Shown one piece after another: positions 11,790-60,600 of a stretch of DNA of 61,667 bases. Under the pieces are notes generated by a model. The model had not been told where the DNA came from. It ran no database searches and saw nothing but the letters and a program-made list of their open reading frames with translations. Position 1 is the first letter of the stretch. Each line of letters starts with the position of its first letter. A program made the position numbers and the translations under genes. The stretch is from Perkinsus chesapeaki ATCC PRA-425 (Eukaryota; Protista; Perkinsozoa). The DNA lies in assembly GCA_013115145.1 (NCBI GenBank), contig JAAPAO010000151.1, positions 1 to 61,667 on the forward strand, given 5' to 3'.

Positions 11790-14700
11790 TGTTATTCGAA
11801 CTCGTTGGCTTCGTTCAAGTCCAATCTCAATTGCTCCATCAAAACAGGCTACCGGAAGGCTTCTAGTATTTCGAGGAATAACAATCTGAATAGGAGAGAA
11901 ATGCTTAGGGTGGGATTCGAACCCAGGAGAAGCCAGGGCCTGCAAACCAACTCTCAATGGTATTTCAAGGGTACGTGGAGAACGCTGAAGTGCACTTGTA
12001 GAAGTTATGAAACAACAAAGCTCGTCAAAACGTGATCCACTTAGCGTCATCACAAACCGTCAAATTCCATAGATTGAAAAAAACTAGTACTTCTAAACCA
12101 TCCATTTGGGTACACAGAATGGCTACTAGCAAGCCTGACTCTAAGGAGACCGGAAATGCCCAGTGGGAGGTGCCACCGTGAAGGCATACTCTCGGCCTTC
12201 AATTTCAAGTGACAGCTCAGAGAGATGGTTAATTATGAGAATAGAGATGACTCGACTAAGTTCAAGCGTTCGCCCCCAACATGAGGAGATCTTACTGCTG
12301 AATTTAAGATTGTATTTATCGATTAATGTATAGTAGTTAATTTCTCATATTAACTTCATGAATTTTTATACAGAATGTGCACGTTTTAAACCATCATCTC
12401 CTCTCACTGATTCGGCGGGTAAAGATTCTCAATACATTTACCCTTCTCTATACACTCGGATACATAAGTCAGCTTACCTCTATAGAGGCACTGGCAGGCA
12501 AAACTAATGGGCGTTGATTCAAACCGTGAGGCGCAATCGGTGTTATCATAATACACGGCACGTTGGGGGCGACCTGAAGGAGCACCAGAGATATCTGCCG
12601 CCTGTAGTATCGATATCTTTCAATTGAGGCCGTAATAATCGTAAATGCACGCCCTACAGTACGTCTTGATAGTCCAAGACGATATAGGAAAATATAACGC
12701 TATGAGACGTCGCTATTTTATGAAGTTTCATAAATTTGGTTACCATCCGAGATGAAAGGTTGACTTTTTCAATGTAACTCTTCAGCAGTATTGTGATCGG
12801 TGAAAATAGAAGTGATCTTACACACGTTAGAATAACAAAAATGATCGAAAGGAATGTCCGAAGCAGAGTGCAGCACTTCGAGGAATGTCCGAAGCAGAGT
12901 GCAGCACTTCGAGGAATGTCCGAAGCAGAGTGCAGCATATCGATGAGTGACAGGTAAATGTAACATCAAATGTTATTCAGAGAGATTGTCTTGTCCCTCT
13001 CGTCCGCATCTGCCACAATGAGTCGGAGTTAGTAATATATCGTACTACTCCTTATTAGGATATCTTATACTCCTATATCTCCATATCTTAGAGTGTAGAT
13101 ACTCAAGAATTTGTAATATGGAGTTACTAACTTCACAATAGAATTGTTTACTGACTACCGCGAAACGCTAAAGTTCCATAATCCCCGACGGTGCATCCCC
13201 AAAGCAGTTTGAAAAAGTGAATCTTTCACAAATCCAACATCGTCCTCTAGTTCAGACTCGTTCAGATTTCGGACATTATCCTCCCCTTTCTCACCAGAGA
13301 TCCACCAGCTGCCATGCTGTACGCACTAGATCCGCTCGGTGTGCAAATAATCAAACCATCGCCTTGGAACTGCGTAACGTATTTCCCATCCACAATGAAA
13401 TCAAACCGCTGCAATGCGGCTTTGGCTCCCCTGAGCTTCACCATAATCGATCAACTGGGCGTGCGCTTTTTACCTCGCTATCACGCACTCGTTCAGCACT
13501 TGCTGCTGCAATATAACTTTCTCAGTGACACCGTCAGTCCCCTCGGGAGCGTCTGATGCGTCGATGGGCGACCCGTCCGGACTTGTTCGAATTTTACTGA
13601 TAACTTCACAGCGAAGTCTTGAACGCATTGTGCAAAACACCTGTGGAGCAATAATCGATCACGTGATCGATTTCCATAAACCTTTTCGGAGTAAACATCA
13701 TTCGAAATACCTTATTGTACAGCAAAGTATCCGAGGCACACAACAGGAACTACGCCCAAGGAACTTCGTATACAGTGTAGACGAGGTGTCATGGTGTAGA
13801 CTCTACAACTATACCCATATATATGCCTAGATCTGGAACGTAAGAAGGTTCCCCATCGATCAGAAACGAGAAGCCATAATCGGACGAAATTGAAAACTAG
13901 TAACCTTACTAGGATTAATTTAAAATAAATTACTTTATAGGACTAAGTCTTCTATGAAGTTTTCCAATATGAACGATGTTCGACAGCAAAATGCTTGACG
14001 CCCTAAGATGGGAATGATCCCTCTTGAGGCTGCTGCCGAAAAGACGCCCCTATTGTCGACATCAGGGCACAGCCCTCCATCGTAGTTGTTCCTGTTTACC
14101 TTGGATTTGGCTTCGTCATCCGCTTTAAGGACATTTTCAATCGGCGCATCGAATACCTTATTCAGCAACTCACGATATCTACAAAGGGAAGATACGAAGA
14201 AATGCGAAGGAACTTTTCAACGGTTTGACACCTGAATAAAGGTTAATAAACTTAATTTATCAAACAAGCCGAATATTTCCTCGAATTTTAAGCCTTCAAT
14301 CGCTGTCAGCTTGCCGGAATACGGCAAGCCTCTGGCACCTACTGTGAACACCCTTCGTGCACGCAAACGCAACTCGCGTTACGCAAGTGATATGTTCGTC
14401 TTCGGTCATGCACTACCGGGACAGTTTATCGCGAGGGCAGTGTGTGATAAGCATCTTCGATTGGCTATCGTCGACGAGCCAGATTGAGGAGACTCTCCGC
14501 CGGAGTCTCCGGCCCGGAGACATATTAACATACTTTGTTTTAGTATCGTCGTTTTAACGAACTGCCCAAAGTGATAGCCATGCGAGGTATACTCCCACAT
14601 AAATTACAAACAGTAGCTCCGGAGGACGTAGACTGAACTGCGTTATGTTGCCGATACCATATTCAAAGTTCCCCGATCAATATTAGCTGCCTTTCAGTGA

Positions 14701-17522: not shown

Positions 17523-18857
17523 TCACCACGCCAATTTGATGCTTCTTCCATCTCGAACTGGATGACTTCTCGGTAACTGTGGTTCATCCGTCGGTGTATC
17601 TGGACCGTTCAAGCTGCTCTGCGATCGGGCCAGCCAGGCGATTCCCAGAATAAACTCCTCAATGTCGATGGTGCCGGACCTGGAAAAAGATACTGAAAAT
17701 CGATCACGTGATCGATTTTACCTGTCAATGTCGAACGCCTGGAATGCACTCAAATATGTCACTCTTGCTAAGGGAATGCTTGTGTGCTTCTCTGAAAAAA
17801 ACAACTTCTGAAATTTTCCGGATTTTCCCAAAAATATAAGATTTGATCAAGGAATTGGAAAACGTGAGTTTCGATTTAGCGTAATCCAGCAGAGCAAAAT
17901 CTCCGGAAAATTTCTGCCAAGGGAAATTTTTTCTCACCTCCGTAGTGGTCATAATTAAGGAAAAAATTGACCAAGGCATATCCGTTCTCAAAATCGACAG
18001 GATCCAGATGCTTTTTCCCGCGCGCCAGAGAATGGAAAATAGTCGCTAATCGATAAAGGGTTTCATAATTGAAGCCGGTACCTGGCGTTGAGGAAATGCA
18101 AGATTTAGCAAGATCAACAAAATCCTTACGTTGCTGTAGGGATGATACTACTTTCGCTTTATCAAGCCATTCTTGCAGTGCCTACCAGGGGAAAAATGCC
18201 GAAATTTTCCAAAAATTCCCAAAACCATGGAACGCGATAATGACTGATCAATTACAGCTAATTATTGAGCGGAAAAACCCGCCGGAATTTTGCGAAAATT
18301 TTGTCAATTTTCCCTTTCCGATGCACGCAAGGGAAGACGCGCCGACTTCTCCAGACTTCCAAAATAATTTCGAGTGCGAAGCTGACTGTTTCCGAGAAGA
18401 TATGTTCAGAGTAATTCATGAAAACCTAGCATGAAGCTAAGATACTCATACCGGCTTGAGCTCTGGTGAAATATTGCCATCAGGTGAGATTCCCGGAAGA
18501 TTTGCTTCCTGTGCTGCCTCGCGACAGAAATCGATGACCGACTTTGGAGTTAGCGAGCGAGCCAGTGCTGGACTTTTCTGAAAATGAAAAAATGAATGAA
18601 TATTATCAAGTATACCGGGACCGAGAATTGAACCCACGACCTCCCGCTTACTGTATCCTGCCATCCTTGAATCAACCCACTTCGCCGCGGAGTTTTCCTC
18701 TTCCCCTCCGCTCGTGGACTCACTTCCGCGGGTGAATCTGCGAAATCGATCATGTGATCGATTACAATCTTCACTTACTAGAAGTCTGATTTAACGGCAA
18801 AGGAGTCGGTATCGATGACGATGAAGACGGTGTCATATCCGGAGACTCCTCCGACAT
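17523..18857 (-). CDS. EF-hand calcium-binding protein (NCS/calcineurin-B-like), copy B, multi-exon
   Basis: ATG at 18857 (MSEESPD). Phase-consistent exons include LQQRTGFNYETLYRLATIFHSL and AFQAFDIDRSGTIDIEEFILGI (canonical EF loop). TGA at 17523-17525. Confidence 0.75.
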
Positions 18858-19018
18858 GGTGAAATCAGAACAGCTACAAAAAATAGGAAAACGGAAAATA
18901 CGATTAAATGCATGAGAAACCGTCACTGGGATTCGAACCTGCGGCTGTTATTAACCACAACTTCACGCAAGATTATGAAGCCTTGTAAATCTTTGATGAA
19001 TTGTATTTTACAAATAAA

Positions 19019-19094: not shown

Positions 19095-22000
19095 TCTTGC
19101 CCAATGCAATTTACTCCGCAAACTATGGAACCAATCATCCAAGTGTTGTGTTGTCGATACAAACGGTACCGGAGACATGCCTAACAGAACGAGAAATGTG
19201 ACTCATCCAGTCCACTCGGTCATCACCTTTAGAGAAAACGGAGAATTTAAAATCCAGATTCTTTAACAGACTCAACTTGCCTTCCTTACTATATCAAAAT
19301 CAACCAATAAATTTCCAAAAATTTTCCATGAAACTTTAAAAAATACTGCCTTATACAAAGTATTAAAATTTCCGGAAATTTTCCGAAATTTTCCCCAACG
19401 TACTTGTCGTTATCCGAACTCTGTTTCCCCTATTCAGCTCGATATTTGTTGCTCCATCAAAACTAGCAATCGGCAAGGTCCTCGATTCCTTCGGAATTCC
19501 AACCTGCAATCAAAAGGTCCCTGGTTCGAATCCCCCGGGAGGCATTTTTTACTTCAATTGTTGCTCCTGCTGGTAAAATCAATGGTCGCTGAGACAGGCC
19601 GTGCGGCGCTATCGGTGTTACCAGAATACAGGGCACATTTGGGGCAACCTGAAAAAATGGAAAATTCATGGTTTAATATCTACCTATTTTTTCAACAAGT
19701 TGTTCTACTTGTCGGTAAGGTAGAGTACCAGTCGTTCACCGAGGAAGTACTAGAGCGACGACCGTTACTTCTTCAGAAAATGAAAATTTTCAGTCGATTT
19801 CTCAAATTTTACATAAAATTTTCATCTATGAAGATCCTTGTTGGAGTTCGAGCATGAATGGCAAGCGAGATTCATGGAAAATGAGGAATTCTGAGATTGA
19901 AATGATTATCTGGACAATTGCCAGCCTTCCGCACTTCAATCATCTACAATCGGACAAAAGGGGGAATGTTTTGGAGATGCTAGGCAAGTCTGCTAAAATC
20001 GAACCTCCAACCGCGGTAAATCCACGTGAAGATCATCATGCTACCGTACCCCGGTTATGCTGGTTCGAAAAGTCATCAAACCTGCGAACTGCTCATCTTT
20101 ACTAAGCAGTGGGGCAAATTGAAAGATTGGAGAACATCACAGATTCGGAAGGCCTCAGTAATTTCCTTACCAGACTTCCACCAGCTGCCATGCTATATGC
20201 ACTCGAACCACTCGGTGTCGCTATTATCAATCCATCAGCTTGGTATTGGGTCATTAGTTGGCCGTCAACGTAGAAATCAAACTTGTGAAATGCTGATACG
20301 CATCCTCTAAGACAAAGGAAGAATATAATCGATCACGTGATCGATTTTGACAACTGATAAATGTTTAGAGCGTCTTGAATTTGTTTTACACAGATATCCA
20401 ATCTATGTTTGAATGTATACGTAGTCAAATAATTAGGGAGCCAGCTTTTGAACAGATACTGACTAGCAAACCTAAATCGATCACGTGATCGATTATCTTA
20501 CCTCGCAATCAAGCACTCGTTCAACACTCTGTGGATTCCAAGAACCTTTGGATCTTCCTCAGACTGGATCACTTCACATCGAAGTCGAGACCGAAGCGTG
20601 CAAAAAACTCTCTAAAAGTAAGGAATCTTAGCTTGAACCGTACAAGATACAAACTAGGTGAACTTTCTACCTTCTTTTTTGCTGCCTCGACATCTTTATC
20701 ATCTTTTCCCAGACAATCCTGTACCGGCGCAACTATCACTTGATTCAATAACGTCTTGAATCTACATTGCACCAAACAAAATGCATCCGAACTGCACCAG
20801 AATGACCTAATATACTTATGTCCTAAACAATATCATTTCATTTGCCCTGTTGTACCACACAACGAAGCTATTACAGTACCCGTCAACTGAGGACTGTATT
20901 TACTTCGCCGAGCTAGGCTGCGAAGTTTTAAACATAGAGGGTTTAATTTACGACAATTACATTGCGCACCTCTACATTGCTCAAAACAGTCCTTGGTGAC
21001 GGGTACTGTAACGCTCGCTTCGAAATGTGATCGCCAACGAACCGCCGCATGCTTGATTTAATTTCCCCTCCCAATCTACGACCTTACTACAGCTACTTTA
21101 ATTACAAATGATTCTCCCCGAGGCAGAATGACCGCGTGAAAGAGAAAATATTCCAAGTTAAATTGGCAATTCTGGCACGCGCAAAATTTTCGCTCGCCCA
21201 TATCAGTAACTAGGCATGAAACGGTTACAATATTTTGACAAGTGGGTCTGAACTACCATATGCGTAACATATCCGAAAATGAGCACTAAACTTGTTCCCG
21301 TTGTGAAGTAAGGATATTACTTCAAAATATTCTAAGTTTATTTGGAGGACTGTAGACCAGAGTTGGCCGAGGCGGCGCAAGTGAAGAATATTCTCTTTAC
21401 GTCTGTTCTGACTTTCTTTTTCACTATTCACGAATACTTCACATTATTTCTGCTATCAGATCATAATGGTACGATAAACACTTATAGGTTTACCGGTTTT
21501 ACTTTTTGACCTGAGTTATCCCTTATAACAATGTCCGAAGACACCTGCCGGCTACCTTCTCACCGACTCGATACAGAAGTCATACCATTCATTGCCGTGA
21601 GAAAATCGGTCGGAATTTTTCCGAAATTTTCCTTCCTTGCCAACAGACGACCACGTCGATATATTCGAGCAGGAAGTAGTTTTTGTAAATTACTTAACTC
21701 AGGTAAAAAACAATGCCAATCCTGTCCAGCTGCCGCATGCTGAGATTCAAGTCAGGAACCAACCGCAGCATGAAACAAATCGTCGAGCAATTACGATTTT
21801 TGAAAGGCAGCCTTCGCCCAGTAATTTCACCAATAAGCTCAACAACATATAGCTCTGAACACACCACGTATACTTTGGGCCGTGAACTGAACCAGCCATA
21901 AATTTACCCTTTCGATCAAAAAATCACACAAGACGCTGAAAAATGAAATTTATACTCTTCACCACGCCTGAAAGTGCTCATTCTCGACAGCGATATCCGC

Positions 22001-23355
22001 TAAATACGTTTTTTCTATCAGAATCGAACACACTGCAAATATAAATGATCGTGAATATCTCTCCCAACTTCCCACCTATCAAATGGATGGGGTGTCAGAA
22101 ATCCCAAGCTTCCCAAAGCAAATGCCACCACCGGAGGAGGCATCACAGTCATAGGTCGATTTCCTGGAGGGCTACCAACATCGGCCGGAGAGGCTGGTGC
22201 GTTTAGGTCATCAGCAGAAGCCGGGAGAGCTGAAAATTGACAAATAAAAAACGCTTCGCTCCGCTAGAATCACATTACTAACCCGGAAACAAGAAAAACT
22301 ACAATGAAAAAACGCTTCGCTCCGCTAAGATCACCGAATTTCTCGTTCTATGCATTATACGGTTTTGGCGTCTTTGGAACACATTTTGGAATTTGCTTTC
22401 TATTATATTCCTTTGCACTTTGATTTCTAGTTTTACCAACACTTCTCCCCGTGACATTGAAGAACAAATGTATTCAATTAAACACCCATTAAAAATGCCC
22501 CCACCAGGATTCGAACCCGCGTCGTCTTACATCGTCCTTCCTCCAACCAGTTGATAGTTCTCAATACCGTCCCATCTCCCCCGAGACACACAACCAAATC
22601 AACCATCAATTGCTGATCCGAATTCTGCTCAGTTGCCGACTCCGTATGATGCGAATCATTTTCATTTTCGATTCCATGAGGGGCAAATTCGGCGAATCTT
22701 CCACATCTAGCGGGTGCGATACCACCAACTGACAGATAGAAAGACCAAATCGATCACGCGATCGATTTAAAATGATGTTCAACTAAAATTCTTCTCTCTA
22801 CACGAATTCAATTACTGAGTGACTGATGATATATGAGAATCCCACAACATTTCTCACTCACACCACACCGCTCTCACCAATCTTAGCAACACGAATTTCA
22901 CGTGAAAAGTTGCCCTTGTAAAATTATTTAATCGATCAACCTCCAATCCGTGACAAGACTCCAAAGACCATCTTATTATTCGCAGAATAGTTACACACTA
23001 ACTCATACCAAAACGTAACATTTGACATACAGATATTCGATATTGGCTCCAACTGTCCACGCTTTAGTCTACCTTAAAATACAGTGCCCCAAGGTTTAAC
23101 ATTTTAAGTCAGAGTTAAATAAATATCTTTTCAAAAAGTGAAGTGCAAGCTTCAACCTCCCCCCGATATAGTACCATCCGGATCGTTAGGATCCATCACC
23201 ACACGAATGTCATACGCAGTTTTAAGCCATCTACCAACTTCAAGCAGAGCCGCCTTCGCTCGATTACTTCCCCATTTCTTTGTCACCAATATGACTTGCG
23301 GACGCGAGCTCCTGACAGAGAGAGTCACGCGCCACAAAATTCCGGACACCCTCAT
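19083..23355 (-). CDS. NADK: NAD kinase (copy A), multi-exon
   Basis: Exons encode [116 protein letters not shown] and [18 protein letters not shown]-stop. Start codon uncertain. Confidence 0.88.
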
Positions 23356-30100: not shown

Positions 30101-33100
30101 TGTCGTGAGCGCCTCGGCCTCAGACTGGCGGGAACAGTTTATGGAGGTGGTCTCATACGGACATCCACGTCTGGCTTTGCAACTGATCATGGAGTCATCT
30201 TTCCCCTTCATCCGGAAGAATTCTTTGGTTTTACGCATGCTGAATGTCGGAATTGGAAAGCATCTATCTGCGGCTTAATCTCACCGGGGGAAAAATCATT
30301 AAGGGCAAATTCTCCGCAAATTCCTGGCGCTCGTGTATGGGGTCCCGGCAGGTGAAAAGAGCTCAGTGGCTTGAAAACTTCAGTGCTTACAGGTCTCAAG
30401 CTAGAGAGAAAATTATAGAGAAACACCAAGTAGCTGCGTTGGAAAACCACTTGATCATCAATCATTGATGCGTCTTTGTTCACTAGAATTATATTTCCTA
30501 TCAAACTTCTTTCTATAACATCTCCATACTGCTAAGAGCACTTCTGGGCTTTCAAGAAACATGTGTTTATGAGGTTGCTTGGATACCTGACTACGGGCAA
30601 TTTTCGTATCGACTCATCTCAGGAAATCAGAGAACATCCGCGAACGCCAGAGCTTGACGATGCGATTTATAAACTGTTCAGAGCCCTCGCGAGCACCCTC
30701 CACAATGCGATTACCAAGAAAACATTTTCAAGGTGAAGGTCGTGGGAACGCTTTGGACGCGTGGTGATTAAGTTAGTATTGGATATTCTGGCACCTGGAA
30801 TCCGGGGACGCGTTTCCCCAAATGTTCGGGGAATCTTTGAGTCGATGATTCGGAGGATCAACGACTTTAACCATCGAGAAACACGTTCGTATGGAGCAGA
30901 TGCTAATAGCACTCAACGCTATGATTGCGCGAGCTGGCGTGCTGGTCAGATTCCTGCGACCGTTGTTGAAGTCGCATGACGGGACGAACATCGACGCCGC
31001 CGGCTCATCGGAGCGTCGTAGCACATCCCTAGTTAAAAGACGCGTGCAGGAGGGTGGACCGAGACCTATGGGGGTAAAGGGCCGTCGGCGGCGCCACTTC
31101 GGTAGCAGCAGCGTTCATCTAAGGTTCTTGACCGCCTCTTCACACTTTTCGACGCCAGCGAATATGGCAGCATCTGTCAGTATGATTTTGTCTCGACCAT
31201 AGAATTGTTTTGGAAGGTAAAGTCATTGGGAAGTCCGACTCGGAATCTTTGGGGCTGTCGCGATGAAGAAGAGTAACGAAAGATTGATTACGATTTTCTC
31301 ACCGGTCGGTGGTGGTGGTTCAATATAACTGTAGAATCGGTAATTTGAGCTCAAGACTTGAACTTCAAGTGGCTTGCTAGAATCTATAAGCCTGCGAAGT
31401 ACAAAAGAAACCAGTTTTCTATTTGTCCAATATTCTCTCTGATTTTCTATTGGCCCGTTCAATAGGGTCCTGTTGATGCCCAGCTGCGCTGTGCCTTCCA
31501 CGTTTATCGGCTGTCGAACAGTCACCGGTACGTCCGAGGCAGGTCGGTTGAAGTGGTTACACGAGAAGATCTTGTAAGCATATCTTAGCTTCATGCGAGG
31601 TTTGAACACGCCTCAGTTTCGCTTGATTAAGCTGGATGCACCTGACTGTGTGTGGATGACCGGCGACATCCGCGGACTCTTGAAGATCTTCTGTTCAAGA
31701 GCAGACGAGTGTCTAGAACGTAAAAATCCAAATCGATTACGCGATCGATTCTGTGTCTCTCAGGCGGCTTGCGATATGGTTCGTCAGTTCAAGGTCTTTG
31801 GGAGGCACAAACGCTACATCCTAGATTCAATCAAAACAACGTAACCATACGACGACTGAACCGCACGGAGCTGACCTCTTTAGATTTTCCTGTATGATGA
31901 CGAGGAAGTCGAGAAGGATGACACTCGAAAGTTCATAGACGACTTAATCCAGCGAATCTCTGAGGAGGACGGATACAACTTAACAAGTGGCGCAAGTACG
32001 AGAAGTCACCATTTCTCTTGAATGCCGGATGATACCGTCGATGACAAGTTGTGAAACGGTCGATCGATGGCGGCCGTAAACGGTTCACGACGAAGAAAGG
32101 GGAGTCCGCTTGGGGGGACGCCTGCCTTTATGCGTTAATGCGTTAAACTATAACATTCTAGCATGCATCTTAAAAGCGATTCATCCACCTCTCCTCTATT
32201 TGAGTATCTACTCTGGCTCATATTTGGCACTAGCCAAATCTCCGGTTATAAATGTCACTCTGGGAAAATTCGTCGGAAGTTCACTCGGCAGCACACGTCG
32301 ACTTCACGCGCGTACTTATATCATACAATGCATACGAATACGAATATCTCAACAATGTCGAGCTACCACCATGATTGCTTCTTCTCTGTACAGCCTGCTT
32401 TTGATTGGTATTATACAGTAACATTCAGTGATACATCTAAAATAAATCTTTTTTGGTATATATGGTATGCTGGGCGAGTCTGACCCAATCGGATAATTAT
32501 ACAGTAAAGATCGGACCCGGTCAGGTCTCTATTGTACAATTAGCATTTTCTGAGCGAACCGAGTTCAGGTCCTATTCGCGACTATATAACGTTCGACGAG
32601 TTCAGATCGACGGCGCGAGCGTGCTCGTTATCAAAATTCTTTGATCACTTGGTAAGTTCCGTGAGGCGATGTAAACGCATAATTATCGGCATCAGATTTC
32701 TTGCTCCAACCTACCAAAGCGGAGATCCGCATGCAAGTGATGATTGCCTTCATCCAGGCTACTATGCTGCCTTGTGTTCTCCAGTAGGTTACTCCTGACC
32801 TGGCCATCAGGGAATTACTCGCTCTTTGAAGGAATAAGTATAAAGGAACTTCCACACGCCTTCTGTTTGTCCTCACAACCGCGAACGAAGGGGACGAACT
32901 TGCACGCCTCGCAAGCGGCGCGGGCGCCAGCAGCTTCTGATGGCCCAACGAGGATGGAGCACAGTAAAGTGTAGCACAGATAACGAATCATTTACCGGGC
33001 AATACAAGAGCATGACTTAAAATTAGAGATACGAAACAACTCGACCATGGCGATAAAAGCAAATAAACTCCCTTAAGACGTTTTAAGAGTCTTAAAACAA

Positions 33101-39555: not shown

Positions 39556-42500
39556 GGCCTAGAGTCCAATGTGCTCTGCTTTTAGTATCCAACTGTTGCC
39601 TATGCTGTACATTTGCCAGCTTCAAGTCGCTTATAACATCATGCAGCTTGTATTGAACTGAGCACACTACCGGGTAGTGACTACCAACACCTAAACTTTT
39701 CTTTCATTCGTTGGTCGGAGGGGTTACAACGGTTTATCGTAGTTTCAACTATGACTTAGCTATGAGTTAGACTGTAGACGAGTGCTGATACACAAGGAGA
39801 AGAACAATAACCTTGTTAAGGCTACGTATTTAATCAGGCGATGCTTTCGGAGGCGGCCGTTAGCCGACTGGCACTCAGACTGATACAATCGACGTTGAGT
39901 CGTTCATAGATTAACTCAAAGTTTGAGTCTCAAACTCTATGACAACGTAGACTAGGATGACAATGATTGTCCGAAAAACGAAATTGATTTTCCTAAGTGA
40001 GTGAAATTGAAAGTACCTCCTGGGTTCGGACGAAATGGGAAGTTCTAAGATGAAATTGAATGTTCCAAACTCGTACAAGATCTTTCTATTTCGGATTTGG
40101 ACCTTCAACGTCGCTCGCCACCACGAAATTGATGTTACCAAGGACGAACTTGAAAAGGTGTAGTATCAGACTCAAATATTTGTAGGATCTCTGATAATCA
40201 GAGATCCTACAAATATTTGCCACCCAGTGGATTACAGGGAATATCTAAACCTTAGAGTTCCAGTTGCAATAGACTTGTCTTTATAATGCTATTATGTTGG
40301 TACGAATGTAAGTTGAACTTACTAAGTTTCATATCGAAAACATTCACCCCTGGGCCTGGCTCTGGTCAAGCTTTTCTATGTTGACCGTCCTTATAGGAGT
40401 TTTCTTCTCCCTTGAAGGGAGTCCCTTCCCTTCCCATTTTTCTTCTTTTTCTAGGATATGAGGAGTGCACTCACCTCAGCTCTCTGCACTTGAATCACTC
40501 ATTTGTGTGAGTCTCACACTGTGAGATTTAACGAGAGTGCTTCGATGGCTGGGGCAGACTCTGCTCAGCAGAGTCTTGCTTTATAGGCAGCTTCGCCTCC
40601 ACCACTTCACCTTTCGCCTTCCAGTCACCCATATCTACGAATCGATACACAACACATCGCGTCTTTTCAAGTTTTAATATTCGGCACACGAAGTGTTTCG
40701 AAGTAAAATCTTGACTAATCCGCCTCTATGACGGGTTATTGTAATAGTAACTCAAAAGCTTATTCCGTCTGAGGATACAAATGGTTCGTAGGTGAGGAGG
40801 TCGATACCGTAAAAAAGCTTAGAAATTTTATACGTTTATTATGAGTTATGGACCGAGTCCACTAGCTAGACGCTAGGAATCTTAGCACACAATTGTGGGA
40901 AACAAATGGCGTGGAAAACAGCACAAAAATTGGGGACAGAAATAACGTCAGCACAGAGAAATTGTGTTGCACGACAATAACATGAATGCCGTTACCGGCA
41001 CACCTCTCGGTCACGCACGCATGCGCATCGGCGAGATGCCACGCTTCATTATAAGAACCTCATGTTGAGAGTTAGTGTCGGTAATGCATCCGAGCTTTGA
41101 TTGTCATCTTTCTTGACCCACCCTACTCCCACCCGTACTTGAAGGGGATGTCCAGCTCGTGACATGGTTGATAATATCTTATTGATATTACCTGTATCAT
41201 TCAGTCCGAGCTGTTCGCTTTCCGTGATATGAGCTCACCTTCCCATTTTCTTGAGTAGCTAGTTCGCGGTCGAACAGTCAGGATTTTACACGACGCGAAA
41301 AACAGTTCCACGCCCTAAAACGGTGAAACTATACCGTGTTAGAAAGTGCAGACGAAAACGGCGGGAAATTTACGCAGGAAACTTTCCAGGGAACTTACGC
41401 GAGATTTCCAAAAGATTCAGAAAGATTTCACTGCAACTGGACTGCGACATTTTCTCGCAATCTACTGCGAGCCTAAGTATGCTCTTCGGGGTATACAAGA
41501 TCACCACGTCTCTCGCCACACTCATGGACCATGAGTCATGTTATACAGCAAAATGCTCGCTCCGGGTAGCCCGCATCCAGAGCTAAGCTCCAAGAGTCAC
41601 TCAGCGCTCATCACTGGTTCAATCGAGTCTTGGGACCCAAGATTTGAGCCATCGTGAGTCCCGTACTCAGAACAGGTAAGATGGATGCATTCCCCTTCCA
41701 GCTTGTTCTAAGACCAATGTTCTTGGATGTTGTAGGATGCTCAGTGCATCGCTCATGTTACTGGACAAAAAGACTCGATACTCTGCATATTAACGACATG
41801 GTAGTATGATCAATTATAATTTGATCATACGTGTGTGCGCGTGTGTGTTTCTGTGTTTATAGTCCAACGCCGAAGAAGGCTTAGCTAGTCTATGAATACT
41901 ATGTGCAGCTTCCTAACAAGAGTTTAATACCTATACTGTCATTGTATGATTCACTCCTTGCGAGCTTCGGAGGCCTCGGTCACATGTTCTTCTTGCATGA
42001 TGCAAGTTGCATCCTCAGTGAGAATACGAACAGAACAGAATACGGCTGGCGCGGCTTCACGGCGTGGGTCACGGCGTACTCTCTGTAGGAGCACCCTGCG
42101 GAGGCTGATGCGAAGCCATCTAAAATTGTCCGTCCTGAGACAAGGCCTAAGCGCTTTTAATATTTATTCTCTGCCCTCCCCCACGGCGCTGTGAAAAAAA
42201 TTCTGGCACAGACATAGCAAGCAATTTACAATCAGCGACAAGACTACCGCGCCGTCTCTTTCACTTCAAAATAACAAAAACAATAAGTCGTCAAAAATGA
42301 TGAAAAATGGGGAAAACTGACAAATCTCTACTAAGGTATCTACTATATCTAATCTAGCTCATATAGACCACATACCATGGTGTGACACCATGGTTCGACT
42401 TCACACAACGGACACCATTGGTGTCCGTTATATGAAGTCGAAACTTGGTTCTATCGCCGATAGTTTCCGTTTCCGTTGGCCGTTTCGTTTCGGTCATGGC

Positions 42501-46731: not shown

Positions 46732-48718
46732 ACGGCCAAAACTGCCTTGAAGAACTTTGTGCTACTTGCGATGCTGTCAGATTGAAAACTTCGCTGTACG
46801 ACTTTGGAATCCTAAGCACCCCTCGTTGATTTTCAGTGGCATCTGAGACGAATTGTGGAGCAAGGAAATTTTGAGAAAGTTTCGCGAAACTCCAGGGGAT
46901 TTTCGCTGAAGGTGGTTTAGCGACGGCCACGGATCTAACCGTCGAAGGGCAGTTTTATCAATCCACGAGGAAGTCGTTACTGACCAGGATTGACACTCGC
47001 GCGCGCGTTGCTAATGATGTTAAGATCTCGCGGGTGGAGTCATGATTGATAAGTCGCTTCGCAGTGTCAATTTGACACTACCGGTGGACGATGGCAAGTA
47101 ACACAATTCGAAGGCTTTGTACCAAGTAGTCCAGACTCTGGACTCCAGAGTAGTCACCCACTGCCTGGTAGCCCTAGCTGGCGACCAGCTCAGCTACGAG
47201 GTACGATAGCTTGAAGCCTCGGAGATAGGTAATGAAGCGTAGTCGCCAACACCCGGGTGAAAGATTCCCGCGAATCTCCTCCTCTCGCGATTCACACCGT
47301 ACGCGTGCGCACGGTGCCAATTCGCACGCCTGCGACCGACCACAACGGCAGGGGAAAGCAAAGACTTGCTGTTGGATGTGACCAAATAGAATAGATTCAC
47401 AGACATGGATGTAGGCTACATCATGTAGCAGACACACCGCTATGAAGGGTTCGAAAAGGAGAAGTACAGGAAGCTTTAACCACGATGTGCTTTGTCTTAG
47501 CTGAAGGATATGAACGCATATACAAGGGTGCAACCATTTTTCCCGCAATTGTGTGATGAGCTTATTCTCGAAAAGTTAACTGGACCATTTAATTGAATCA
47601 GAAGGGAATTCACGCGACACCTAACGTAGAAAAAAAACTATTGTTGTCATTCGAGCATACATTTGCTTTATCCCGGCAAACCGAATGAGCAGTCGAACTT
47701 CGAGGTTGGAGGTGTGACGCGGGATATGTGAGTGTCAGCAAACATCAGCAGTGCTAATTCAACACCTCTCGACCGGAGAAAGACGAGAGCAGGTTATCAG
47801 CTTCGGTAACTTAACTCATCCAGATTCTGCTCGTAATACATAAACGTATTTCGCTTGCCAGTTGGGAGCTAGGCGGCGTCATACAGGTTTCAAAGTTCAC
47901 ACACTATCGGTGAAAATCACATCACCTTGCCAGCCGTTGTGCTTTTGTGGTTGCACACAGGCCCTTGGATGCGTAAGGGAATTCTGCTAGGAGAAGTAGG
48001 ATCTCTTTTGACTAGTTAAATTCCCTTGAGTGAACCGTACAGTGGAAATAACAGTATAGGTATTAAACTGCCGTTCGGAAGTTGTACATAGTATGGATAG
48101 TCTAACTAAGCCTTCTTCGGCGTTGAACTTTAAACTCACACACATATATGAATAGCTTCACAGTACGATATACAACATATCCCCATATTGCTCGAAGTTT
48201 CCGAGTCGGACATTTATACGTTCTGTGATTGAATATATAGATTCCTCAAAAACTCTATATCTAAATCTGTGCGGGCTTTTCTTGGTCAGACTAATAAGAA
48301 CGGATGATGACGGCCAAAATGCTCATACACATGATTGAACTCTATGTTAATAAGTATAGCAACTAATAGTAGATGCACCCAGAATCGGTTATTTATCTGC
48401 GGGAAGGGTAAGGTTCGAACGTTAGGCGTCCTCAAGTGCAAGGCTGGCAGCAAACCCCTAGCATTGGTGCTTCGCCGCCGCCCGCTCCATGGAAGATGCT
48501 AATTCACCGTGCGAGAGGCTAATTGTAAGAAGTAGCCTTTATTGACTCGCCTCTCGACTTGTGTTCGAAAAACAAGCAACAGTAATTGAGTTACCCCTCT
48601 TTTCGAGGCGAAACAATGTTACTAGAAAAACTCAGAGCAACATTGATGTGAATAACAGAGAAACATTAGAAAGTGTTTAAGTGTGATTCCGACTCAGTCT
48701 TGTAACAAAATCATTTCT

Positions 48719-50328
48719 TTATTCAAGATGGGAGTAACCATTCTGTGAGGAACCGATCGCCGAAACACCCTTCGGCTTCCGGACGTGCGCCTCTGCGTCG
48801 GCGACGTAGACGTCGGCCTCGCCACGCGCGTCCTCCTAAAGACAAAAAAACAAGTCGCGATCGTAGTTGGCTTTATCTTACGGGAGCTGCTCGAAGCTCA
48901 TTGGCCTTCTCAGCCTCGCGAGTATCATTAGTAGGAATCAGAGGTTCAGTCGAGCGCCTAAGATTAACGAAATGACAAGACCAGGAAATGAACCAGGGTC
49001 GTTAGAACTAAAGACGAACGCTCTACCGCTACGCCATAGAAGACTTACTCTGCGTCAGGTAGGCCTGCATCAGGGTTTGATTGTTCTTGCTGGACAATCT
49101 CTGGCGTTTGCACTTTCGGCAAAACTGCTGTTCCCTGGACGACCGGTGTGGCGGTCGCAGTTGCTACCGCTGGTTGAGGAACTTCTATCTTTGCTACCAT
49201 TTCTGGTATGGTTTGTGACAGAGCGTCGACACAATCACGGTTCTGTGTAACCGTCGAGGAGAAGTACTGCGACAACTGAGGGAAAGAGCTTTTGAATACG
49301 AGCTGCTTGCACGAAGAAATGTGAACATCTTTCGAGTAGCCGTAGAAAATACACTCTAAGAGGAGATCTACAGATCGACGATCTAAAATAACGAAGTGAA
49401 AATCGTTATTATTAACGGAAAACCTAATTTATAATTTTCATGGGAAGCATGAGATATTCATGCACTCCAAACGTAGGTTCAATTCATGAATCTCCAGTGG
49501 GTCCCGATGAGGTTCAGCTTAAATCTTTTCGTGAATCCCCCTTAGTATAGTTGAATAGTGTAGAGCCTGGGCAGCCAGTGAGCCGGTCAGGCAAGGTAAT
49601 ACGTTTAACCGAATCAGTACGAGTTAAAAACCATTCTCACCGCTTCGACAATTTCCCCGACATCCTTCTGTCGTCGACCGAGTATGTCTTTGATGTCTCT
49701 GTCCACACTGCGATCTAGACGATCGCAGTTCTCCTGTGCTTCTCTGAACTTCACCAGATTCTGCAAAAAATTTAAAATTTCCGGAAAATTTCCAAAAAAT
49801 TTACTCTGTCCAATTTTTCCTTAGCAGAATCTGAGCTCGATCCGTTCTCAACTTTCTTCTGGTATTTCTTCTGCAAGTCATCCGTCTTGACCTCGTAGTG
49901 CTTCACCAATCCGTGCGCTCTATCTCGGTCAGTCAGATCCGTCTGGGCAATGTAAAGAGCGCTCGCGCAGATGATCGATTATATTAACGCTCACCCTTAG
50001 TGTCTTGATTCGGCCGTCCAGTCTGTCAATCTTGCCCTTGGCTCTCCCGAGACATGCTAGAGAGTTTTCACCGCTATGATTGAAATGCGACATTTGCTCC
50101 GAGAACACAGCGAATGCGGCGGAGGTGTCCTGAGTAGGACAGATTTTGCGTGTTATGAAAAATATCTTCTGATAGAAACCTTTCTTTTATTTCTCCTAAT
50201 CTAGAAGCACGTTGATGCTCTAGGTATGCACTCACCTCACTGCCGGCAGTGGACTCTGTGCTAGTGGAGCTCTTCGGGTCGGCTGCCTCCCGAGAGAATC
50301 TTGCAACATTGAGATATCTCGGGTTCAT
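48719..50328 (-). CDS. Coiled-coil protein, BAR-domain-like, with a low-complexity C-terminal tail; multi-exon
   Basis: Exons give KIDRLDGRIKTLRTDLTDRDRAHGLVKHYEVKTDDLQKK and EKAQENCDRLDRSVDRDIKDILGRRQKDVGEIVEA, followed by a P/T/A-rich tail. BAR assignment is by resemblance only. Confidence 0.6.
48973..49045 (-). tRNA. Degenerate full-length tRNA-like sequence filling a 91-nt intron
   Basis: TGGCGTAGCGGTAGAGCG (A box/D arm) ... CGAC-CCTGG-TTCATTT-CCTGG (B box/T arm), inside intron 48958-49048. Confidence 0.5.
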
Positions 50329-50379
50329 CTGCTGCTGATTGGCGGTGATGTGATCGACTTCCGAGGAAAGTTGCTAAAA

Positions 50380-50452: not shown

Positions 50453-50680
50453 AAATATTCTCACCAGCAACTTGGAGTTGTAGTCCAATAAATCCTTCCT
50501 CTCGCCGACCAGCGGATCCTCATCAAACTCCTTCACGCCGAACATCTGAGCATCTCGCCATAATTTCGCGGCGCGTGACCGTACTCTCTTACCTTCTCCT
50601 TCATACTCCTGAAGGTCTTGTTATCAAACCATGAAGTCATAATGTTAGTAAATTATTAGCAATAACAAATCTGATGGAAA

Positions 50681-50880
50681 GTTTGATAGGAAATATGTTA
50701 CTAGTGATACGGAGGAGGAGATATAATAGAAAGGAGTTTGATAGGAAATATGTTACTAGTGATACGGAGGAGGAGATATAATAGAAAGGAGTTTGATAGG
50801 AAATATGTTACTAGTGATACGGAGGAGGAGATATAATAGAAAGGAGTTTGATAGGAAATATGTTACTAGTGATACGGAGG
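50681..50880. repeat. 55-bp tandem minisatellite, 3.6 copies
   Basis: Identical units start at 50681, 50736, 50791 and 50846. Confidence 0.95.
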
Positions 50881-54037: not shown

Positions 54038-56625
54038 ATGGAATCAGCAACAACAACTCCTACCATTTCCACTCCGAGTCCAGCCAACTTCGACCTCACC
54101 TCCACCGACGACAGTTCCGACTCTACGACTCTGGTTGCTCATCATCAGTTGCACCCACTCAATAAGACTTGGAGCTTTTGGTTAATGTATCAAGCTCAAA
54201 CTAAGGTGATCACTTTACCGCTAATTTCTCCATCTGAGCTTTCTTACCTTCAAGACATTTTTATTTTATTTATCATAATTTTGATGCGGGATATCGTCCA
54301 CGTAGACTTTATATTTTTTACTTCAAGTGGACTTAAACATCGTTATTATTTTATTATTGCAAATTGTATTGTTATGATTTTTATGTTTGTGGGAATCTGT
54401 ACCAAAATCGACCGACAGTAGCGACTTTCTAACGGTATAATGTTACTATGCATATAATTTCACCTGTCACTTCTTTGCATTTCACATTGTGCAGTTTTAT
54501 ATGTTATCGGCTCTCTTTCACCCAGTTAGGATCATCTAACCGAGACTAGACCCATCCCTTCTACTGGTTGACTTCGACCATTTTTACCTATACTTTATAC
54601 GGTCGACTTTCCTCTACCCGCCTTCTCTCGCGCCAATGATCTGTCCTTAGTTCTACACTAGTCATTTTTGGAGATTCTCGCCGAATCCAATTTCATAAAG
54701 CTTCTCTCATTTTCGATCGGAGTGACACCATCACTGTGACGTGACTTGCCGGAAAATTTTCGCTCTTCCCTGCTTCCCAAATCTTTTTCTTTTCTCCTTT
54801 TTTGGTGGAGTTCCTAATTCCTCGGTCAGTCGTCCAGTCTGACCTCTCATCCATCTTCAAGTGGCTCACGGTTGTTAATCTTCAAAGTTGTAACATTCTC
54901 ATACGAATAATTTGCTTTCCTACCGTTACTTTATTTACCGTACGTTATACGACACTTCTTCCTCGAACAGCTTGTATAGTCACAAAGCGGCAGTTACGGT
55001 TTTTGTTTTCATTAAGGAATTTCCAGTAAATTTTTTTGTATATTTACCAGCTCCTGATTCTTGCTCCTCTGCCGGAATTTCGCTTTACTGTATTCCCTTG
55101 ATCAAATTTTCATACCAACTTTTCCTCAACTTCTCCCCTCAGGATAAAAAGGATAATTGGAAAAATACACAGAAGAAGATTTTGGACTTTTCCACCGTCG
55201 AAGATTTTTGGCGAATAGTCAACAACGTTTCGGCGCCGAGTCGACTGAGTTATGCTGACTACAGTGTTTTCCGGGATGGAGTATCGCCGATGTGGGAAGA
55301 TCCAGAATGCGCCAAGGGTGGCCGATGGATTGTGGCAGTTGATCGATTTATGAGACGGGATGCCCGTTCGGAGGGCCAGGAGGAGGTGAGCAACTTTTAG
55401 GGGAGATTCGGTTATAATGTGATATCACTGGATTCGTTCCAGGAAAATGCATCGCCATTTTCGGACAATTCTGTTTTATTTTGGGATGGTTCAAATTGCT
55501 GTGGAGAATTTTATGCTTTCGAGTTTAACTCTCAGTTTGGATCGTCTTTCCAGATTTTGTTAATGTCCCTTTCCAGTGCGTACTAGTGTGCGGTTTTGGG
55601 TTGAGCGATATACATGCTGTTTGAAAATATTTTTTATAAGTATATAAATATTATATAAAAATTTGTTGTTAGTTAATATTTTATTTGGGTATTCCGGTTA
55701 GGAAAATCGATGTCAGTTTGGGTCTCTTAGCATTCGTGAATGATGAGGTGCGGTTTACTTTGTGGGGGTATCGAGTCGGAGGTACTGGAGAGAAATAATT
55801 GTTTTAGTTGTCGAGATTAAGATTGGCAGCGTATCTTCTATTTGCGTGAAATGCATGCTTCGAGCAGATTATCGGGGGGAAAGAAACTACTATCTGGATG
55901 AAATGACACAGGAAGATTGTTAGCGAATCTTATATCGATATGGAATGCACGTTTTAAGCTCATTCTTATTGATGAAATGTACGCTTCAAGAAGATATCTT
56001 TTCCCTGTATGGAGTGCATGCTTGAACCTCTTCTCTCAGGCCTTAGACGAGAGCTGGCTTAATGTCGTTTTGTCTCTTATTGGAGGCGCTGCTTATCATG
56101 ATGAAATTCGCGGAGAAGATTTGCCTGTTTGCGGTGGAGTATGTTCCGTCCGAAAATATAATTGCAAAATCGCCCTTTGGGTTGGGACGTCCGAGGAAGG
56201 GTTACTCTTAAAAGCAGGAAAGCAGTTTCGGAAATCCTTGAAGTAAGGGGGTAATCGATCGATTGATCGATTTGGTATAGCGTCTTATTTTGTAATGCTT
56301 GCGAATATTGAACCCGCGAGGGGCCGCATTCGTTGGTCATTCTTACCATGTATATGGAAGAATATACTAGCAAGAAAAGCTATGAGTTATATCAGGGTAT
56401 CTTAGCTTGACGTGCGCAAGATGCAAAATAGCTCATCGTTACTCCTTCAGGCCTCTCATCGATTATATGACCAATTTGGATAACAACACCTCTTCCGAAG
56501 AAGAAAACTCCCGTCGTCCTGCAAGGCCGTCAGTTCGATCGAAATCAATTCAGTTTGAGTTCTTCTCCAATAACATAAAATCGGCTGCTCCTTTGGAGCT
56601 GCCATTCGTCGAGGAGGAAGAATAA
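54038..56625 (+). CDS. eIF4E: Eukaryotic translation initiation factor 4E family protein
   Basis: Exons 54038-54205, 55143-55385, 56040-56242, 56281-56291 (11 nt) and 56432-56625. Motifs HPLNKTWSFW, FSTVEDFW, YSVFRDGVSPMWEDP..GGRW, DESWLNVVLSLIG, KIALW. Confidence 0.92.
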
Positions 56626-57626
56626 TAATACAATCGATCAACTGGGCGCGCGCTAATTGCAAATAGCGTCTGGAGGCGGTTGTTGTATATTTATTATATT
56701 CTATAGTTGCGCACTGTGAAGAATTGAAAGATTCTTTGTGGGAGAATCTTCTTTGCGATGATTGCTAGCTTGAAAGTATCTTAGGTTGATATGAGATGCA
56801 CGGTCGAGGTTATATATAATGTTACTTATTGACATAATCTAGTTATTGGTACAATCTTCGTCTGCGCATATCTTAGCTTGAACCGTGCAAGATACTTTAC
56901 AGGTTAAAGACTGGCTATACAGTAAAACGGTTGTCGATCAGTAGGTGTTATGATGATCGTTACGTATACTTATATTAGCGCTCTTGTTGAGTTGCAGTTC
57001 TTCAATCATTCAAAGAAATATTTTCTCAGGATACTTCGTAAAACCTTTCGACGAACCAATCTCGATGGGAATGCACTGAACTAAAATAAAATCGATTAGT
57101 GTTATGTGGAGTTTCCCGGACAATTTGCTGGCTCATGAAGCAAGCTACATTGTATGTAGGAGATCATAGAGGAGCATCAGAGATCCGTTAGGTCCACGAA
57201 GAAGAAGAAGGAGGAGGAGGAGGAATGCATTTTATATGCCTTTTGGTTTAATAACATCTTCTGGCATGATTTCTTAATGTGGGAATTAACAACACTCTCA
57301 ATACTCAATGGTGGCGCAATCACCTCAGAGGCGATTGCGTCAAAAATGTCTTCCGAGAAATTGATTTCGCCATGAAGGTATAGGTTTGATAATTCCATCT
57401 TTGGACACTTTCACGACGGCAGCTTTCGTACCGACGCCTTCGGTTCACCCAAGTTGGGGGTTGGATTTTATTTCTTGCGGGATGAAACTTTTTATCGAAG
57501 GAAAATTGAGCGGGAAAATTTTCATTTTACACGACTATTCTTTGTATGGGAAATGTTCACGAAGGGGAAAATATTTAACTGAGTCGATTTTCCATTTCCT
57601 CAGTCATCGTTGAATATTATTCTCGA

Positions 57627-60600
57627 ATGCTAACCGAAGATGACAGTCGTCGGCAGGCTCGGAAATATTCTGGCAATTCTTTCATGCAACAGCGGCTCAC
57701 AGCATGGCAACCTCTCTTGAGTCCTGGGTATTAATGGGAAGGGAGGGAATATACCTCTTAACATCGTTTATCACCAGTCATTTCATTACTTTCACTAGGG
57801 CAGATCAGGGTTGCTAAAAGTGGCTCAAGATTGGTGTGAATCGCTAAATCGCTGCCGATACTTAACCTCTTTCTTCTACTATGAATTTCGTCTACCCTAA
57901 TATTAAATATGTTTTTGAGCTTGTCGTACCACTTCCGCATTGTTTCTCTCTTCGGCCCTATTCAGAAAGGAAAGACGTAAAAAGATACTTCCTCGAGAAA
58001 CTGTTTTTCAGTTTTTTCAGTCTTCAGAAAATTTCTATTTTTTTCAGGTGGGTCATCGCGGCATTCGTTGGATTCGGAGCAGTTTTTTTGGCAATGGGAA
58101 CTGGGCTGTCGGTTGTAAGACTTGAAAGTCTCGTGGGATTTTCTATCGCTTGCTCCAGTGGTGAGAAGTATCTAGATATAGAATCTCATGTTGAAGCGTG
58201 CACGATGCAAACTAGCTTAGCCTCCAGGGACTTCCTGTTTGAAAGCCTATTCAACCTTCCTTATCGGATGGTAGAAATATATCTCTTCACCAAGCTCATT
58301 GCAAGCTTTTTCGTCACGTAAAATACAATCCGACCTCCCTTGATTTTTTTAATTTCGTGGCGCGTGACTATTTCTCATCCAGGCAAATGCGTCGTCTGGT
58401 GAGTATACGAAGGAGTACACTAGATTAAGTGCGAACGGAGTTGCAGTTGTTGAGATTGAAATTGGACAGGACATGCCAGCGGCGTCGACATACCTGTAAA
58501 AAGGTGTCCGAATTATTGAGGGTTTGATGTGTAGTTAAAGGGAGAGGATTCTGTAAGATTTCAGTGAGACTGTGATAGAGGAATTAAGTCGCATGTGTGA
58601 GTTGAATGGTCTCATTACGATTGGTTTAGAACAACACATTCTTTTATGGTATGATTGCCATTAGGAACATCCTTCGATTTTCGAGAAAGATATTTCTGTT
58701 TGGGATGGGTTGGCTAATATTATCAGGTATTACGAGATTGGTGATTTTTATCAGAATCATAGAAGGTTTGTTACGTCGAGATCTGACGAACAGCTAGCCG
58801 GTGATAATCGATCACGTGATCGATTTGGCAGGGTGGCAATATGTAGATCCCTCGAGCGTGAAATTCGGCGAGAAAGCTCCGTCGGAGTGCGAGCCTGCTA
58901 CAGTTGGCAGTAATGGAAAGGTGTAGTTATCCTTGCGCATGCGTGCAAAGATATTTTATAGCCCAGCTTTTAGACTTTACCCTTGCGGGTTGGTGGCAAG
59001 ATCGATCTTTAATGATAGCTTTGTAGTCGATATAAAAAAGAGGAGTTCTTCGAATGAGTGGAGGAGGGCAGAAGTGAACGAAGTGGGTATTAATCTGCTG
59101 CTGTTGCCCTAGCAGCAGCAGGTAGGAATCGTCTAGGCTCACAGAAATACAGTATGTTCATCGTGGAACACTGTAATGGACTTTATGCCAGAAAATATAT
59201 TCCTTTAGCCTTCTGGTTTGATGGGGCGTGGGTTCGATTCCTGGCTGGGATATCTAGAATTTTTGGAGGAAATCGTTTTTGGGAATCTCACCGAGTTTTG
59301 TGGCGCTCCTTTGAATTTTCGCGAAATTTGCGTAATTTTTCGGAAAAAAATCGAACACTGTTTCAATTTCAACACTGGTAACTCATTTTGAGTGTGAGGG
59401 AATTACTTCATTAACGAATTTAGAAATCGATCACGTGATCGATTTATTCCTCAGTCGGCGGAAGTGATTACGTGGAAGGCGGACTTGGCTCATAAATTTA
59501 AGAATTTGGTTCCGAGTGAGCAAGTTGCTGGCGGGAAGATCCGAAATGATGAAGCGTTCGATATGTGGCTGACGAGCATCTTTCCACCGGAGGTTTGTGT
59601 ATGATGGGCGGGTGGTTTTAATGCGACCTGTTTTGTATCTTACCAGCTTCGACTCTAATAGGAATCATGTAACATAATTTATGTTGGTATTTCAAAGTGT
59701 ACCGGCAAACCTGTTCCCTTGTAGAGATACCCTTCGATGACCCTGTGAGACTTTCTTTCTGCCAAGCTGACCTATTTTGTATCTTTCTGGCATATTGCAA
59801 TAAGTTGAAGTCGATTCCCGAAATTACGCATTGTGTCGAGGGGGACAGCGGGCGTAGCGAAAACCGAGGCATGTGGAGCACGCTAGAATGGCCTTCGAGT
59901 TGACCTGTAGTATGCAAGTATCATGCATGCTTCAAGTTAAGATACCATCCAGCGTTGTAGCAGAAGGTCGGTATGAGCCGATATTTGTGTTGAGTAGAAA
60001 AGATCGAACAGCGGCTTGCGACGGATATGATAATGAAGGTAAAGGGGGAAGATGTAAATTCACTAAGGTAATAGGAGACAATAAGTCTACCTATTTTGTA
60101 TCCTGCACGCTTCAACCTCAGGTACCATTTGGTGTAGAGGGCAGAGACCCTGAGTTCCTCTGTTCTGATGGGTACCAACGGAAGCCCAACCCTTCAGGTC
60201 AAAAAACCGGAAAAATTTTTCCCGAAATTTTTTTCAAGGTTGTTTTAACAAGTCCTAATTTTTTTCAGGTTGGGGAGTAGAGAATGCTCATTTTGTCAAC
60301 TGGATGCGACCGGCGGCGAAATCAACATTCCGGAAAGTTTACGGAAAATTCGTTGAGGAACTGCAAGTGAGAGCAAGATTGCAAGATTCCTGGCTTCATC
60401 CTTCGTAGGAAGGTGATGTGATACGGGTGACAATTTTCGACAACTTCCCTGTGTATAGTTTCGGCGGTAAGAAATCGACTGTCGTGGCGAGCGCTACTTG
60501 GTTCGGCGGAAGCAACAAATATTTGAGTTTGGCGTATCTTTTGGGCGGTGGAATATGTTTGGTGTTCGCGGCTATTTTTGGAATTAGTAATATGTTGCTG

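Follow-up and report, generated by a model that had tools for sequence, protein, structure and literature searches.

A recurrent 20-nt palindrome beside splice sites in old introns of Perkinsus chesapeaki, a candidate splicing signal

Inverted repeats at intron ends are known from Amoebophrya, whose introners carry repeated inverted repeats of 8–20 nt at both ends of the intron, with a predicted fold that joins these ends (Farhat et al., 2021, PMC7789003). Such introners have no GT-AG boundaries, carry direct repeats of 3–5 nt across their boundaries and are considered to be invaders that generate introns (PMC7789003). They represent the nearest published case to the element described here, the palindromic 20-mer AATCGATCACGTGATCGATT, which recurs in introns along contig JAAPAO010000151.1 of Perkinsus chesapeaki (GCA_013115145.1); the entire contig (61,667 nt) was analysed and is hereafter called the window. 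The two cases are alike in belonging to related lineages and in having inverted repeats at intron ends, but the Perkinsus host introns are old and of the GT-AG type, and they hold one fixed 20-mer, 4–20 nt inside the boundary and without direct repeats. With a probability of about 0.4, selection maintains the palindrome as an inverted-repeat element beside splice sites, where it would work in the pre-mRNA, single copies as hairpins and paired copies as a bridge over the intron. Full-text searches of the literature turned up no description of this element in Perkinsus.

The effective intron is known to be shortened by complementary sequences, one close to the donor and the other close to the branch site or acceptor, in yeast RP51B-type stems, in the (AC)n/(GT)n intron ends of zebrafish and in the non-conventional introns of euglenids. 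One intron of the window, 195 nt long (intron 11 of the gene NADK-A), is predicted to be shortened likewise. Intron-bridging secondary structures are dealt with in one published source (PMC3935182). The known bridging stems are intron-specific or consist of simple repeats, whereas in Perkinsus a single self-complementary 20-mer is found across genes, mostly as one copy per intron, and its arms are conserved as sequence. A different kind of intronic signal is represented by the G-run splicing enhancers near the donors of short introns, which are unstructured protein-binding motifs; they occupy the same position window as the palindrome, which in contrast is a perfect inverted repeat and occurs on the acceptor side too.

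A search of the window recovered six exact copies of the 20-mer and four variants with 1–3 mismatches (Table 1), all at the places reported in the initial annotation of this DNA, while 100 dinucleotide-preserving shuffles yielded no copy. By frequency the 20-mer tops the dispersed k-mers of the window, with tRNA B-box-like motifs and a 55-bp tandem array ranking behind it. The main contigs of a second DNA sample of P. chesapeaki are identical to the window at the copies. Scans of the window for tRNA genes and Rfam families gave no match, and a metagenome scan for the exact 20-mer returned two matches, which is the chance level. A phage collection, queried only with an unrelated open reading frame, gave no match. 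The whole sample amounts to 12 copies in about 160 kb over three Perkinsus species, P. chesapeaki, P. olseni and P. marinus.

All ten copies of the window are intronic, in agreement with the initial annotation: three are placed by the exact spliced map of the annotated protein P0151, five by homology with a paralog or with P. olseni and P. marinus, and two (18744 and 31731) by inference only. A search for RNA runs that contain the stretch found none, and the intron calls thus rest on annotation and homology; a naive splice-and-open-reading-frame search could not fix the boundaries. The main hosts are two old tandem paralogs of an EF-hand-bearing NAD kinase, NADK-A and NADK-B, which lie on the minus strand between 25588 and 11586; the separate EF-hand gene that had been listed next to NADK, eIF4E and CDC50 is in fact the N-terminal part of these NAD kinase genes. 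The ends of the 459-nt NADK-B intron are set by homology with NADK-A (DEAKSK|VFCT), and both exon edges of the 42-nt NADK-B intron (17680–17721) match those of NADK-A intron 5. For the copy at 58806 an intron of 46 nt, with an acceptor (AG|ATCC) common to the three species, is more likely than the 31-nt intron first proposed. The intron around 31731 stays ambiguous after enumeration of gene models for the 233-aa gene that contains it. Only three or four of the host introns are tiny (41–46 nt), the hosts of 13653, 56253 and 59425 being several times longer (Table 1). What had been said about distance holds for every copy: each lies within about 25 nt of a splice site, at 4–15 nt from a donor or 6–21 nt from an acceptor.

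This closeness is also found where the intron leaves ample room. The six copies in introns of 195–459 nt stand 7–20 nt from one splice site, a departure from uniform placement with a combined p of 0.006 by Fisher's method. Moreover, of the 26.5 kb annotated around the NADK genes, introns take up about 10.3 kb and contain eight copies, against none in the unannotated or intergenic part of about 10 kb (binomial, about 0.004; this is our own count, on an annotation that may be incomplete). Intronic splicing enhancers normally occupy this zone, close to the donor or a little upstream of the acceptor. In the 14 introns of NADK-A, GGGG runs number 30 per kb in the first 40 nt past the donor versus 1.5 per kb deeper in the intron, a 20-fold difference; near the donor they are found in six of the 14 introns, and they resemble donor-proximal splicing enhancers. 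In orthologous introns that have no palindrome, G-runs stand at the position that it would occupy. This enrichment, together with the occupation of the same position, fits a functional zone just inside the donor.

The conserved unit is an inverted repeat of 8+4+8 nt, in which the arms AATCGATC and GATCGATT surround a free centre of 4 nt. When the ten copies and the non-redundant P. olseni variant are considered together, eight substitutions fall in the four central positions and one in the 16 arm positions (binomial, 1.9e-5). To the variant centres listed in Table 1, the P. olseni NADK copy adds GCCT. The sole arm change, at 31731, puts a T in place of a C opposite a G, which would give a G·U pair if the plus strand is transcribed. 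All five variants therefore retain the 8-bp arms, one of them through this G·U pair, as in a stem-loop whose pairing is kept while its loop varies. Two-sided compensatory changes of the stem were looked for and none was found in the 12 copies, the arms being nearly invariant.

Invariant arms around a free spacer are equally the expected form of a DNA-level site for a sequence-specific dimeric protein, with two inverted 8-bp half-sites separated by 4 bp, which would be intronic for the reason that introns make up most of the tolerant DNA in these genes. CACGTG, the E-box or CDEI-type motif, is the site of basic helix-loop-helix-zipper dimers, and the exact copies do contain TCACGTGA; the initial annotation had suggested a dimeric protein bound to a CACGTG core. 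This core, unlike an E-box, is the least conserved part of the Perkinsus element: four of the ten copies in the window, and the NADK copy of P. olseni, depart from TCACGTGA, and since these changes fall in the centre, CACGTG is not what is kept. A dimer that reads the two 8-bp arms instead is possible. In its favor, the half-site also occurs alone, joined to another GC-rich module, in all three species: this second type of element, here called family 2, consists of one palindrome arm (ATCGATCA[A]C) and the GC-rich quasi-palindrome GGGCGYGCGC, and is found in both orientations. Furthermore, a flank of one or two letters is common to several copies in either orientation with respect to transcription. 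A DNA-binding site, however, leaves unexplained both the proximity of the copies to splice sites in long introns (4–20 nt) and their absence from the roughly 10 kb of unannotated and intergenic DNA covered, and we know of no candidate protein. A role purely at the DNA level is thus judged unlikely.

The history of the element can be followed in the two sister species. Both non-redundant copies of P. olseni, in the 41 kb examined, match sites occupied in P. chesapeaki. One is an exact 20-mer (20/20), present in two assemblies, 8 nt past the donor of the orthologous CDC50 intron; the other, also seen in two assemblies, lies 11 nt past the donor of NADK intron 11 and matches at 18/20 positions with perfect arms. 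The rest of these introns is not alignable with P. chesapeaki, and the flanks of the two CDC50 copies differ (GTAAGCAC / CAGAAA versus GTGAT / TGGCAG), as does the length of the intron. Since the flanking intron DNA no longer aligns, retention of the palindrome to the letter argues for constraint. At the second CDC50 site, equivalent to 59425, P. olseni keeps a remnant of the right arm only, and at its orthologous eIF4E intron site there is no palindrome. In P. marinus no copy was found in about 60 kb, orthologous introns included, against two per 41 kb in P. olseni and ten per 62 kb in P. chesapeaki. In an eIF4E exon, P. olseni and P. marinus are 88% identical, while either is 75–78% identical to P. 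chesapeaki. P. olseni and P. marinus being closer to each other, the copies shared by P. olseni and P. chesapeaki date to the common ancestor of all three. As far as these sequence comparisons go, the simplest history would be that of an ancestral element, kept and multiplied in P. chesapeaki, kept in part in P. olseni and lost in P. marinus. The family would accordingly predate the split of P. chesapeaki and P. olseni and may have multiplied in the former by some copy mechanism.

Such an uneven distribution (many identical copies, unequal among species) could also arise from a selfish or mutational product without any function, namely a palindromic micro-element or a repair scar, left by fold-back synthesis or transposon excision next to a recurrent 10-mer and kept perfect by templated correction of one arm against the other. 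Copies have indeed been gained and lost between paralogous and orthologous introns, and the window is about 10-fold rich in short perfect palindromes in general (97 versus 5–14 in block shuffles). In addition, homologous sites can hold the palindrome in one gene or species and family 2 in another, which hints that an arm can be copied in inverted form. On the other hand, no flanking duplication is seen at any copy, and the general short palindromes have a one-letter centre and a variable sequence, whereas the 20-mer has an even centre and a constant one. Self-correction would keep the symmetry but not an identical arm sequence in two species, nor would it explain the closeness to splice sites; and the fact that both P. 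olseni copies stand at sites occupied in P. chesapeaki, between flanks that hold no shared target, speaks for descent and constraint. A functionless origin is a real possibility, though a doubtful one. The more specific comparison with hAT-type excision scars (7 nt, the reverse complement of 8 nt and 7 nt) was rejected: these too are short perfect palindromes in non-coding DNA, but they vary in sequence, have a one-letter centre and often overlap in pairs, while the element has an even centre, is kept between species and is the same 20-mer everywhere, independently of the site. A link to the Dada transposons of P. marinus was likewise discarded, Dada elements targeting tRNA genes and having no tie to the palindrome motif.

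In transposon-type introners and miniature inverted-repeat transposable elements (MITEs), as in Micromonas, Aureococcus and Polarella (cited in PMC13685798), a sequence family is repeated in many introns. The footprint of an introner-like element had been envisaged in the initial annotation; the origin considered here is an introner or MITE that creates introns on insertion. The presence of a repeated sequence in many introns, one of which is bracketed by inverted copies, is compatible with it, and the related Amoebophrya has introners with terminal inverted repeats (PMC7789003). The Perkinsus element, however, does not mark new intron positions: the seven host introns that could be checked, which hold eight of the ten copies, are all old, being common to the paralog and/or to P. 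olseni and P. marinus whether the palindrome is there or not. Nor does it bring similarity over the whole intron or carry its own splice sites, as only the 20-mer is common to the copies, the offsets from GT and AG vary as given above and the flanks are unrelated. Terminal inverted repeats around a shared interior, typical of a MITE or of cut-and-paste elements, are not seen either: nine copies have no internal sequence, and the 128-nt stretch that separates the pair in intron 11 was not seen to recur in the window. At none of the ten copies is there an adjacent direct repeat of 2–10 nt that could represent a target-site duplication. Contigs that belong to other parts of the genome stack up over the copies, and their similarity ends precisely at the edges of the palindrome (17697/8, 20346/7, 20474/5 and 22767/8), so that the dispersed unit is the 20-mer itself. 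Old host introns without target-site duplication indicate that the element is not an introner, an origin that we consider extremely improbable.

A role in splicing could also be more limited, with the palindrome supplying a branch point through the TGAT of its right arm, or through an ATTAT extension, presented 13–28 nt upstream of the acceptor. TGAT matches YTRAY, a loose consensus of branch sites, its A is 13–28 nt from an acceptor in eight of the ten copies, and the right arm is the better-kept half in decayed copies and in family 2. For these eight copies the branch point seen in GTGAT by the initial annotation is thus conceivable, but it cannot hold for 20475, 56253 and the two P. olseni copies, which stand on the donor side of long introns, 90–180 nt from the acceptor. 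Moreover, family 2 occurs in both orientations, and a branch point buried in a stem would be unfavourable. As a general explanation, branch-point supply is very unlikely.

The palindrome is probably a working signal, and RNA splicing is most likely its role. The data show that the element recurs, that it lies close to splice sites in old introns, that its arms are conserved around a free centre and that P. olseni has copies at equivalent intron positions; that it operates on RNA and influences splicing is inferred. The element would reside in pre-existing introns, in a narrow zone adjoining a splice site, where a lone copy would fold, next to the donor or shortly before the acceptor, into a hairpin of 8 bp; for a single copy, an 8-bp stem with a 4-nt loop is predicted at -8.1 kcal/mol. 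Because every copy is self-complementary, two copies in the same intron can pair with each other, over at least 20 bp, and would loop out the interior and leave donor and acceptor about 30 nt apart. This is what is predicted for NADK-A intron 11, whose minimum free energy fold pairs both copies and extends into their flanks (-60.4 kcal/mol, z -4.5), bringing its two splice sites to that distance. Since the arm sequence is unchanged, a sequence-specific factor, rather than the fold alone, is suggested as the reader of the element. The juxtaposition of splice sites by a hairpin, also put forward in the initial annotation, is the reading that best fits the conserved arms, the varying centre, the closeness to splice sites in long introns and the pairing predicted within intron 11.

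Several observations weigh against this splicing element. The other long introns of the NADK gene show no general end-to-end pairing, intron 11 alone standing out; most introns, and the orthologous introns of P. marinus, manage without a palindrome. A hairpin that starts 4–5 nt after the GT, as at 17698 and 58806, could hinder pairing with U1/U6. Family 2, although it has an arm in common with the palindrome, gives no fold, and one of its copies is outside introns. In the lack of compensatory changes, invariant arms suit a protein site in DNA as well as a stem in RNA. Finally, 12 copies in the DNA covered are a small sample and not a genome-wide census.

A bolder extension of the splicing element, speculative and in our view unlikely, is that one self-complementary 20-mer serves as a genome-wide tag of intron ends, read both as sequence and as structure. 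Any two copies in one transcript could zip together, so that introns far above the usual 40–60 nt would be handled like micro-introns, and at internal acceptors the tag may help cis-splicing to prevail over spliced-leader trans-splicing. Selection on it would have begun before P. chesapeaki and P. olseni split, and P. marinus would later have dropped it. Perkinsids are the sister group of dinoflagellates, and their relatives have unusual introns and trans-splicing. If the role in splicing is true, the palindrome would be one of the few instances in which many introns of unrelated genes have the same fixed and structured sequence, kept across species. As one 20-mer it would offer a simple experimental handle, within the existing Perkinsus transfection system, on how the same spliceosome deals with very short and much longer introns, and the pattern among the three species (rich, sparse, absent) would be a natural experiment on the gain and loss of such a signal. 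Even as a site that acts at the DNA level, or as a repair product that renews itself, it would point to a new sequence-specific activity in an oyster parasite of economic importance.

Table 1. Palindrome copies, family-2 elements and host genes in the window.
Feature	Position	Strand	Context	Intron placement
NADK-A	25588–19083	-	616 aa, annotated protein P0151; 14 introns of 44–1269 nt	exact spliced map
NADK-B	18857–11586	-	678 aa	
Unnamed gene	30891–32021		233 aa, annotated	
eIF4E	~54.0–56.6 kb	+		
CDC50	~57.7–60.6 kb	+		
Exact palindrome	13653–13672	-	12 nt upstream of acceptor, 459-nt NADK-B intron 13641–14099	homology
Exact palindrome	17698–17717	-	4 nt downstream of donor, 42-nt NADK-B intron 17680–17721	homology
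Variant, centre ATGT (+ strand)	18744–18763	-	putative first NADK-B intron, 37–41 nt (18738–18778), boundaries inferred only	inference only
NADK-A intron 11	20307–20501	-	195 nt, an exact copy at each end	exact spliced map (P0151)
Exact palindrome	20327–20346	-	20 nt ahead of acceptor of NADK-A intron 11	exact spliced map
Exact palindrome	20475–20494	-	7 nt past donor of NADK-A intron 11	exact spliced map
Variant, centre ACGC (+ strand)	22748–22767	-	19 nt ahead of acceptor, 446-nt NADK-A intron 7 (22729–23174)	exact spliced map
Variant, one centre and one arm change (C8 to T)	31731–31750	+	putative 44-nt intron 31720–31763 of the unnamed gene	inference only
Variant, centre GATT	56253–56272	+	10 nt past donor, 208-nt eIF4E intron 56243–56450	homology
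Exact palindrome	58806–58825	+	5 nt past donor, 46-nt CDC50 intron 58801–58846; in-frame 31-nt alternative exists	homology
Exact palindrome	59425–59444	+	10 nt ahead of acceptor, 368-nt CDC50 intron 59087–59454	homology
Family 2, arm TTGATCGATT	13446–13466	-	43-nt NADK-B intron 13440–13482, at the position of NADK-A intron 11	
Family 2	56632–56655 (56633–56653)	-	few bases past the stop of the last eIF4E reading frame, probably not intronic	
Looser family-2-like element	49950–49985	+	apparent 49-nt intron; GCGCTCGCGC replaces GGGCGYGCGC; misses the strict pattern	

Family 2 is found at sites homologous to those of the palindrome in the NADK-B intron that matches intron 11 and in intron 7 of P. 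olseni. The former, a 43-nt intron, had been considered as the host of a decayed palindrome; this was rejected, the element belonging instead to family 2, which is found in all three species.

As for the host genes, the EF-hand and NAD kinase domains are also joined in homologs of other protists, and in P. marinus the gene model of the NAD kinase is fused to a pseudouridine synthase. Introns 13 (49 nt) and 10 (59 nt) of NADK-A align with P. olseni, whereas most introns do not. Between 18645 and 19050 the haplotypes are very divergent: beside a contig of the second DNA sample that is identical to the window, another differs by about 11% over 400 nt (45 letters, 16 gaps), and this divergent haplotype spans the palindrome copy at 18744.

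Other repeats were noted in the window. The short palindromes with a one-letter centre, which resemble the 20-mer neither in shape nor in sequence, often come as two overlapping ones with an offset of 7 nt (e.g., 752–773, 2888–2909, 38791–38814 and 47128–47151), and at 40173–40219 there is a large one, perfect too, whose 23-bp arms flank a single central letter. tRNA-like pieces with the B-box GGTTCGAATCC are present inside introns at 19504–19552, 22495–22530, 59200–59260 and other places. The tandem array at 50680–50870 has a 55-bp unit in 4–5 copies, with one related copy near 30491. Lastly, DUF6740 is weakly matched by each of two open reading frames in tandem, both about 286 aa long (1542–2402 and 4920–5783).

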